DNA of 64,000 bases from positions 34,920 through 98,919 of the forward strand of contig RDEW01000063.1 in assembly GCA_011109175.1 (NCBI GenBank), given 5' to 3'. The notes beneath the pieces were generated by a model that was not told the DNA's origin, searched no databases, and saw only the letters and a program-made list of their open reading frames with translations. Shown here piece after piece: positions 4,801-6,748 of this stretch. The first letter of the stretch is position 1, and each line of letters begins with the position of its first letter. The position numbers and the translations under genes were made by a program. Source of the DNA: Dicyema japonicum (lineage: Eukaryota > Animalia > Dicyemida).

Positions 4801-6748
4801 TTAGTCTACGTAGAATAAATGGTCTCAGAACCTAAAACTGACAAATCCATTAAAACTTTATGAAGTCGACCGATCAATTTTTCGTTGTATTCTTTAGTAC
4901 CCTCAATAATTCCAGTAAGGGGAATGGAAAACCAATCTTTGAAATCGCAGTAAGATTGAAAAACGTAAGGCATTAAAAAATGCATCAATGACCACAATTC
5001 CATCAAATCATTCTGTAAGGGTGTCCCTGTTAGAAGCAGACGACGCTGACTGTGAAAATTTAGCAGTAACTGCCAACGTTTTGATTTGAAATTTTTAATA
5101 TTTTGAGCCTCAAATAAATAATGATTTAACCTCATCGAGAATCATATATCTCCATCTTTTTCTTTTGAATGGTAAATTATCCTGTAATACAATCCTGTAG
5201 GATGTAATGCAAACGTGAAAAGCATTTGTTTTACTCCATCCCTGTAAATAAATAAAATTATCACTTTCCGTTTTTCTTTACGTTCAGCCACATTTCCAAA
5301 ATAACAGAGTATTTTGAACGAAGGGCACCATTTTTTGAGTTCAATCTCCCAATTAAGGAGTACGCTAGTAGGAACAATAATTAGATGAGGCCCCCAAATT
5401 CCCTCTTCGTATGCTAAATGTGCCAGTAATGATATTGTTTGAATGGTCTTCCCCAATCCCATTTCATCAGCCAAAATTCCATTAAGTTTGTTTTTGTACA
5501 AGGTAACCAACCAATTTAACCCTATCATTTGATATTCCCTAAGTTGATGTCGTAGAAGAACAGGATGTTGCACAGTAACCTATAATCTCACACAACCACT
5601 ACTTCAGTCGTTGTTAAAGTAAATCCAGTAGGTTTTAATGCATAAGCAGAATTTGTGATTGTTGAAATATCACTATCTTTCTCTGAAATAACTTTTGAGT
5701 TTGGCTGTTCTGCTGACTTTGACGATTATTTAGATGTTATTTCTGAAATAAATAAATTTTTACTCTTTTTAGAACTTGTCTTTGATTTTTGTGGTTCTTC
5801 GAGAGATTGAACAGATTCAGTATTAACTAATTTGGCATTGGCCCATCCCTCAGACAGAACAGATGAGTATTTTTCTGTTTGATTTACAAGCAAATTTAGA
5901 TGATAATTAATGGTTTTCTTTTTAAGGACAGCTTCTTGGCTGGTAGAGAGATGCTTCATAATTTTGTCAATCTTTATCCAAAAGAGTTTAATTAGCTTGG
6001 CCACATCCGATGCAAGTTTCTTGACTCTTGCTAACTCTGCCTTGTCATCCTTTTCCTTATTCTGAGTCGTCACAGAGTGCTTTATGCATGCTTTAGAAAA
6101 CTTGAGATTATTATTAATATAATTACTTTTCTAGCCGCCACAACCTTCCAGTGTTTCTCCTAATTGATATCATTAGACATCCATCGCATCTCACCCAAAA
6201 GCCAGTCCCAATGACTCTTGTTTTAGCTTACTTCACGTATTTTCGGAATCTGTTTAATAATCCAAAAGCCCTGATGTTTTAATTCATCCACCCTGTTTAT
6301 AATTTTTATTTCCTAAGATAAATTAGATTATGTACATGGGCTGCTTGTTCCGCTATGGTCTAGTTCTTATACTTGCTAAGTATCATATTCTCAATCCGAT
6401 CAAAATTAGATCCTTTCAAATATATCATAAATCTACCTTCTTTATCGTTGGAGATTAGTCCTTGTGTCTTAAAAATGAAAAAATATCCAAAACCAGAAAG
6501 GAGTTCTCTAGACAAGAGAAGTCGTCTTCTAGTTTCCAGTGAGAAAAAAGATCGTTCAGGTCTTTTTTCTTATACTGAAGGAATAAATTTATTATATTTT
6601 GGTTATAGTTTTGCTTAGCTGTCTCAAAATCCTTGGAAAGCACATCCTCGATAATTCGCAAACGTTTGGAAAATCTTTTTGAGTCGTTTTTTGCGACTGC
6701 CTTTATCTTTTTGGGAGTAACTTTCACATGACACTTTTCGTCAGGCAT
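1895..6748 (-). CDS. SRCAP: SRCAP/domino (SWR1-family) SNF2 ATPase; ~21 introns of 21-26 nt; 4 in-frame TAR codons in the 5' part
   Basis: HSA-like [13 protein letters not shown]; [102 protein letters not shown]; C-terminal AT-hooks RGRKP and GRGRPR. Confidence 0.95.

Follow-up and report, generated by a model that had tools for sequence, protein, structure and literature searches.

Four in-frame TAA/TAG codons in a SRCAP-type gene of Dicyema japonicum, most likely ordinary stop lesions or assembly copy mix-ups

Human SRCAP, Drosophila Domino and yeast Swr1 are Snf2 ATPases that exchange H2A.Z. They have an N-terminal HSA helix, an ATPase in which a long insertion separates SNF2-rel_dom from Helicase_C, and, close to the C-terminus, AT-hook-like GRGRP motifs. 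The window, the 64,000-nucleotide stretch of Dicyema japonicum DNA that we analysed, contains a gene with each of these features, whose post-HSA region is colinear with residues 134-255 of human SRCAP. It differs from its relatives in carrying four TAA/TAG codons within its first 301 codons and in having micro-introns of 19-31 nt, and its length of about 1,450 codons falls far short of the 3,230 residues of the human SRCAP chain.

Translated stops of this kind have been described elsewhere. In ciliate codes that read UAR as Gln, and in the context-dependent codes of Condylostoma and Parduczia, only TAA and TAG are affected, as they are here, and one of the Dicyema sites falls on what we take to be a Gln of human SRCAP. 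Dicyema departs from such codes in that no cognate tRNA was found, the eRF1 motifs are kept, and TAR codons (TAA or TAG) are absent from the remainder of SRCAP and from the PRP8 N-terminus. Programmed UAG readthrough is known from the gag-pol pseudoknot of MuLV and the CARYYA context of TMV, where, as in Dicyema SRCAP, UAG/UAA lies inside a continuing open frame; however, Dicyema has four sites rather than one, no CARYYA-type context, and downstream folds with z-scores of only -0.3 to -2.0. We know of no nuclear stop reassignment in animals.

A different precedent is microconversion from a pseudogene into its gene, as from CYP21A1P into CYP21A2 and from SBDSP into SBDS. As in those cases, Dicyema appears to combine a functional parent with highly similar dead copies, and the disabling letters sit in short tracts of identity. 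Unlike in those cases, the Dicyema copies are dispersed on other scaffolds, an assembler could mimic the pattern, and both the exchange and its direction have to be deduced. For the four codons in the Dicyema gene we found recoding and editing not supported, and consider ordinary stop lesions, or mix-ups of copies during assembly, most likely.

Gene model and the four TAR codons

The gene, its six N-terminal introns, the four in-frame stops and the HSA core lie at the following window coordinates.

1873..6748, minus strand: SRCAP/SWR1/Domino-type Snf2 ATPase gene (splice-aware model, Pfam and match to human SRCAP)
5580..6493 (span), minus strand: six N-terminal GT-AG micro-introns, together 143 nt (splice-aware model)
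6360..6362, minus strand: stop 1, TAG, codon 113, in frame; also in the copies on scaffolds C332 and C268
6223..6225, minus strand: stop 2, TAA, codon 151; also in C332, AGA in the copy on C179
6160..6162, minus strand: stop 3, TAG, codon 172, within the HSA helix; also in C332, ATT in C179
5726..5728, minus strand: stop 4, TAA, codon 301; also in C332, with a CCA variant in read contigs
6121..6222, minus strand: HSA-domain core, profile positions 8-41, read through the TAG at 6160-62 (33 bits)

The curated model runs from an ATG at 6748 to a TAA at 1875 and comprises about 1,458 codons and ~20 AT-rich introns of 19-31 nt. Introns this small agree with the dicyemid median of 27 bp (PMC6543705). 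Removing the six N-terminal micro-introns (6493-6468, 6436-6413, 6335-6313, 6126-6101, 5763-5743 and 5602-5580) brings all four stops into the frame opened by the 6748 ATG, and with about 14 further AT-rich introns, also of 19-31 nt, the remainder of the gene reads cleanly throughout, with no in-frame stop in the 1,100+ codons downstream of stop 4. A first-pass annotation of this DNA had placed four in-frame TAA/TAG codons in the SRCAP N-terminus, all of them TAR and none TGA, with the next in-frame ATG inside LREYQM and no internal TAR in the ATPase. The curated model bears this out: the four codons are at their minus-strand positions in a single frame, the first in-frame ATG beyond stop 4 is the M of LREYQM, past the conserved LREYQ motif, and SNF2-rel_dom and Helicase_C are intact. 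The clustering of TAR in the 5' part of the gene exceeds chance (TAR versus CAR, 4 versus 13 in the first 311 codons and 0 versus 41 thereafter; Fisher p 0.0056).

The domain order is that of the SRCAP family. An HSA domain lies N-terminal of the ATPase, and the Snf2 ATPase is split, with Pfam matches to SNF2-rel_dom on 5145-5579 and 4809-5141, to Helicase_C on 3157-3372, and about 300 codons between the two. What the window gene lacks, given its four TAR codons, is the uninterrupted single reading frame of a SRCAP/SWR1/Domino ATPase. The 20-aa piece bounded by these stops in the HSA region, stops 2 and 3 (6163-6222), matches the Pfam HSA profile (E 1.1e-4) as well as the EP400/SRCAP HSA helix, the profile alignment spans the TAG at 6160-62 gap-free, and the exon after this piece aligns to human SRCAP 173-255 (E 5.5e-10). 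Judging by the spacing and the human sequence, we take the TAG at 6160 to stand at the conserved Gln of human SRCAP; the matching codon in the C179 copy encodes Ile.

Database searches were run exon by exon rather than on the joined SRCAP protein. The joined spliced model, built with an X at each stop, was used for coordinates, codon counts and one local comparison to two loci of the same genome. Two exact look-ups in protein collections gave no match, and a protein-collection search with the 134-aa exon, whose product is altered by an unsupported letter at 6705, returned no homologue.

Decayed copies and the identity tracts that hold the stops

A second intact SRCAP copy, which the first-pass annotation had envisaged, did not turn up anywhere in the assembly (67.5 Mb, 377 scaffolds): every further copy recovered by DNA, protein and HSA-profile searches was decayed or internally deleted, and the complete ATPase is present in the window copy alone. 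Whole-genome searches located partial SRCAP copies on C332, C348, C235 and C268, with more in the reads, and the copied sequence corresponds to two segments of the window gene.

5481..6880, minus strand: first copied SRCAP segment; the 6880 boundary is common to C332 and C348
2821..4488, minus strand: second copied SRCAP segment; adjoins 5481 directly in the copies

On C332, window positions 6880-5481 are fused directly to 4486-2821 at 92-94% identity. The C348 copy consists of 6880-6514, an N gap and then 4488-3853, the C235 copy of 4081-2823 and the C268 copy of 6658-6245. Because the second segment directly adjoins 5481, the copies are without 5480-4487, which encodes ATPase lobe 1. All four TAR codons are common to the window and C332, and C268 carries stop 1.

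The copies are clearly dead. C332 has 15 coding indels in addition to the 994-nt deletion of ATPase lobe 1, and seven private stops (3 TGA, 3 TAA and 1 TAG), and each of the four copies shows the disabling lesions and relaxed constraint of a duplicated pseudogene. Two single-base indels of opposite sign (+1/-1), at 6724 and 6693 in the first exon and 31 nt apart, separate the window from C332 and C348; here the window frame stays open and the copies have TGA codons.

The upstream flanks of C332 and C348 are 91-96% identical, and the downstream flanks of C332 and C235, which include a LINE reverse-transcriptase fragment, are 98-99.6% identical. These flanks are common among the copies but absent at the window, which points to a single capture and later amplification. 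In the N-terminal and C-terminal parts alike, the window falls outside the copies as their outgroup. A more distant SRCAP-like copy at C179:223694-226795 is older, 30-40% identical, and has internal deletions. Its HSA helix and pre-HSA region are intact, it is without the post-HSA region and ATPase lobe 1, and its alignment with the window gene is colinear across stops 2 and 3; possible identities are an ancient pseudogene and a derived HSA-only gene.

Several repeats and other duplicates were seen along the way. Within the window, a 274-aa ORF at 20109-20930 (+) represents part of a LINE reverse transcriptase, with a weak RVT_1 match, and on C332 the SRCAP pseudogene piece is followed immediately by a 90%-identical LINE fragment of this kind (L012:3293-4571). 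Just downstream of SRCAP, at 1268-1543, is a 275-nt element found at many genomic places at 94-99% identity (1,058 first-look candidates), which looks like a young SINE-like repeat. Decayed PRP8 N-terminal fragments at C367:1048636-1049058, C112:709455-709607 and C157:124474-124581, found in addition to the intact gene at C112:1223799-1224297, are a further example of dead housekeeping-gene duplicates in the Dicyema japonicum genome.

Since the split from the window copy, the C332 lineage has accumulated 22 disruptive lesions, 13 of them N-terminal and 9 C-terminal, and the window copy has accumulated none (equal-rate p of 1e-4 and 2e-3 for the two parts, respectively). Pairwise dN/dS is 0.57 for the ATPase control and 0.59 for the N-terminal part, with 0.39 for the stretch from stop 1 to stop 4; for a three-taxon estimate, the N-terminal counts are too small to separate the lineages. 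The window gene thus has four stops, no other lesion and a dN/dS equal to its ATPase control, which is not the profile of a duplicated pseudogene. The contrast of zero new lesions with 22 in C332 implies that the window copy was under selection until recently, and the selected look of the parent's N-terminal frame argues against an N-terminus that is old, neutral and dead. If the stops are common by descent, they would have to be old and tolerated.

In the alignment of the window with C332, the four stops lie in three runs of perfect identity.

6106..6234, unstranded: longest perfect-identity run between window and C332, 129 nt; contains stops 2 and 3
6293..6373, unstranded: second-longest run, 81 nt; contains stop 1
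5676..5753, unstranded: third-longest run, 78 nt; contains stop 4

All four stops being inside the three longest runs has a chance probability of about 0.002. We read this placement as the probable footprint of copy-to-copy exchange, whether by gene conversion or by mixing of paralogues in the assembler. Against exchange, the window-specific letter at 6235 stands only 10 nt from stop 2, stop 1 is flanked by 6352 and 6377, and window-specific synonymous differences at 6292 and 6235 persist inside the putative exchanged tract.

Read contigs, transcripts and the decoding machinery

The D. japonicum assembly was made from pooled animals with Platanus, SSPACE, GapCloser and HaploMerger, and the genome has 1.24% heterozygosity, 49% repeats and a BUSCO/CEGMA completeness of 76-77% (PMC6736024). 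Our read evidence consists of contigs of sequencing runs, which drop minor variants, with the per-site differences listed in part. Spliced RNA is represented by run X2 (2017 study), whose record 9 is without 70 nt that correspond to three ATPase introns and whose record 14 (5489-6759) is without 143 nt, the exact sum of the six N-terminal micro-introns. Because exactly these six ordinary introns are missing, the four stop positions are retained in RNA, contradicting the earlier suggestion that atypical introns might remove three of them. Stop-removing alternative splicing was rejected as a candidate on the same contig, and also because a permissive search for it needed GC-rich, atypical "introns" that destroy conserved HSA residues. 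None of the RNA contigs had a joint skipping the N-terminal stop region.

At 21 of the 23 marker sites from 5838 to 6495, record 14 has the window-type letter. From 5675 to 5503 it has copy-type letters, and it then runs into the copies' deletion junction at 5489, so it is a copy-derived or chimeric contig, and we rejected it as clean mRNA of the parent gene. Given the position of stop 2 next to 6235 and of stop 1 between 6352 and 6377, molecules that combine window letters with these stops must exist, and an independent RNA contig likewise has the window letters at 6235, 6352 and 6377; these two stops are thus unlikely to be purely a chimera of the assembler.

Among the differences listed for any run, single-run rows included, there was no variant or stop-free form of stops 1-3. 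Stop 4 also occurs as CCA, together with two nearby changes; this variant accounts for about one third of the DNA depth and is the sole form in the RNA contig. Across the whole 2.1 kb, X2 RNA differs from the window by A>G at 5 places and T>C at 3; the A>G changes at 4924, 5728 and 6267 and the T>C changes at 5504 and 5517 fall outside stops 1-3 and are present in DNA too. There are therefore too few such places for all of stops 1-3 to be edited in the dominant RNA, and, judging by these contigs, its complete restoration by A-to-I changes or by the U-to-C editing raised by the first-pass annotation is improbable.

The assembly is imperfect at SRCAP. The window letters at 4924, 5644 and 6705 differ from those of every read contig of three runs, and the consensus there is private or wrong; at 6705, an Ile-to-Arg difference in the first exon, all paralogues carry the other letter too. 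X1 record 7, a DNA contig of a copy, disagrees with the assembled C332 at 6267, 6352 and 6377, and at 6352 and 6377 it is the assembled C332 that bears window letters and the copy's read contig that does not. The CCA form at stop 4 is a further case. In addition, read contigs of X1 and X4 over 4800-5482 represent an ATPase lobe-1 copy of ~92% identity, with a 4-nt exon insertion at 4974, that has no counterpart in the assembly.

Among the tRNA genes scanned and in eRF1, we found no sign of machinery that would decode UAR as Gln. A Gln anticodon-arm pattern with YTR at the anticodon identified six true Gln tRNA genes, four UUG (TTG) and two CUG (CTG), and no tRNA at the YTA matches; Gln tRNAs with UUA or CUA anticodons, which recoding had been expected to involve, were thus not among them. 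Nor was a suppressor tRNA present among 50 other tRNA genes scanned, an incomplete inventory in which 63 of 5,263 candidates were scored. The gene for eRF1 (C101:88743-91919), where altered stop-recognition motifs had been considered, retains GTS, NIKS (as TATNIKS) and YxCxxxF (as YLCDNKF), its sole departure being Ser to Thr (TATNIKS versus the usual TASNIKS).

Readthrough fared no better. The contexts of the four stops differ (TAG-A, TAA-A, TAG-G and TAA-T, a purine following three of the four), the 90 nt downstream fold with z-scores of -0.5, -2.0, -0.7 and -0.3 against 0.05 +/- 0.9 for controls, and we found no 3' context or RNA structure shared by the sequences after the four stops. The N-terminal domain of PRP8, the 5' end of another long mRNA, contains no in-frame stop, its TAAs being intronic, and SRCAP itself terminates in TAA; in these two sequences, TAR is neither spread over genes nor unused as a terminator, as it would be if UAR meant Gln. 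With no suppressor tRNA found, a near-canonical eRF1, no common context or structure, and the codons retained in RNA, recoding or editing of the four codons is not supported. The fallback proposals of the first-pass annotation, mutation of the 5' region or consensus error, are still alive and have gained strength from the decayed paralogues that have the same stops in the longest identity blocks. Separately, we noted two A_deamin loci (ADAR/ADAT1-type) at C212:121569-122519 and C223:1193338-1193892.

Origin of the four stops

The explanation that we tentatively place first is that the four TAA/TAG codons are stop letters of pseudogene type that came into the parent by exchange, through gene conversion or through assembler mixing of paralogues. 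A SRCAP piece (6880-5481 plus 4486-2821) would have been captured once at another locus, beside a LINE fragment, and would have decayed there before amplifying to at least four places (C332, C348, C235 and C268), with the window copy as the selected parent gene. Parent and dead copies, at 93-95% identity, may then have exchanged sequence, confined to otherwise identical stretches. This could have happened in the animal, where short gene-conversion tracts would produce a damaged allele, or in silico, where the sequence of pooled heterozygous animals went through de Bruijn, bubble-merging and gap-closing steps that would merge the copies. The window would, on this proposal, show the copies' four stop letters because the two exchanged sequence.

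We infer exchange, rather than descent, as the source of the parent's stops, and likewise its direction. Besides the window-specific letters close to stops 1 and 2 and the lack of a stop-free form of stops 1-3 among the listed differences, two observations make the proposal less than comfortable. The window is the outgroup in both parts of the gene, so by plain parsimony the stops are older than the capture, which counts against exchange. Furthermore, stop gains are about 9% of C332 substitutions, and three stops with almost no other change in 87 well-conserved HSA codons are unlikely to have arisen by random decay of a copy.

The simplest account of four common stops would be that they are real and old, and that the N-terminus is dispensable, the HSA domain being dead and the ATPase arising from a start further downstream or from a shortened transcript. 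Such a loss would fit the strongly reduced gene set of dicyemids (PMC6736024) and the restriction of the stops to the first 301 codons. We nevertheless think it unlikely, since neutrality predicts about 8-13 more stops or frameshifts where 0 are observed, the sole in-frame AUG past stop 4 comes only after the conserved LREYQ, and the RNA contigs are without a joint skipping the region.

Alternatively, the TAR codons may be ancestral to the copy family and tolerated, with purifying selection ever since. If the gene was kept in this way, ribosomes must pass the four stops, by efficient local readthrough or bypass. Parsimony favours this idea, as the stops are common to the parent and to copies with different flanking variants, with the window as outgroup. 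So do the N-terminal disruptions (0 in the window, 13 in the C332 lineage), the similar dN/dS of the stop-bearing part and the ATPase, the use of TAR to the exclusion of TGA, the absence of an AUG from stop 4 to the conserved LREYQ motif, and the retention of the codon positions in spliced RNA. However, only UUG and CUG Gln tRNA genes were found and none of the suppressor type, the eRF1 motifs are intact, a purine follows three of the four stops with nothing common in context or structure, and TAR is missing from the other 1,100+ codons and from the PRP8 N-terminus. Four readthroughs in series, at ordinary efficiency, would yield almost no product, and it would be left unexplained why the stops fall within the three longest blocks of identity. 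The prior for stop bypass in a nuclear gene of an animal is very low and nothing molecular in our data supports it, and we regard this explanation as quite unlikely.

Still less probable in our judgement is that the window locus is a young dead duplicate and that the working SRCAP is missing from the assembly. A BUSCO/CEGMA completeness of 76-77% leaves room for a missing gene (PMC6736024), and the reads do contain the extra ~92% identical ATPase-region copy that lies outside the assembly. That unassembled copy, however, has the 4-nt exon insertion at 4974, the window gene is free of lesions over about 1,450 codons save for the four stops, which neutral evolution disallows, and no other HSA/SRCAP locus free of large deletions was found. 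Finally, RNA editing that restores sense codons, by U-to-C or by A-to-I changes making UAG/UAA into UGG, is very improbable: although ADAR favours the UAG triplet and C212 and C223 carry A_deamin (ADAR/ADAT-type) genes, the eight A>G and T>C places in X2 are mostly elsewhere and in DNA, no row is listed at stops 1-3 even though single-run rows are, and the TAA-to-CCA change at stop 4 also occurs in DNA.

Exchange between the parent and its dead copies therefore remains the reading that we prefer; its support is direct though circumstantial, and both the genome and the assembly are susceptible to it. If the four stops are copy-derived lesions or a product of assembly mixing, then apparent "recoding" in this repeat-rich assembly, with its many dead gene copies, needs a paralogue check first. 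If the parent truly carries all four, Dicyema SRCAP would be a strong candidate for a nuclear gene of an animal whose in-frame stops are translated, something without precedent; the basis of that candidacy would be the lack of any new lesion since the split and a constraint equal to that of the ATPase. Were bypass of ancestral stops to prove true, it would represent a gene-local and efficient passage of stop codons that works without a dedicated suppressor tRNA.
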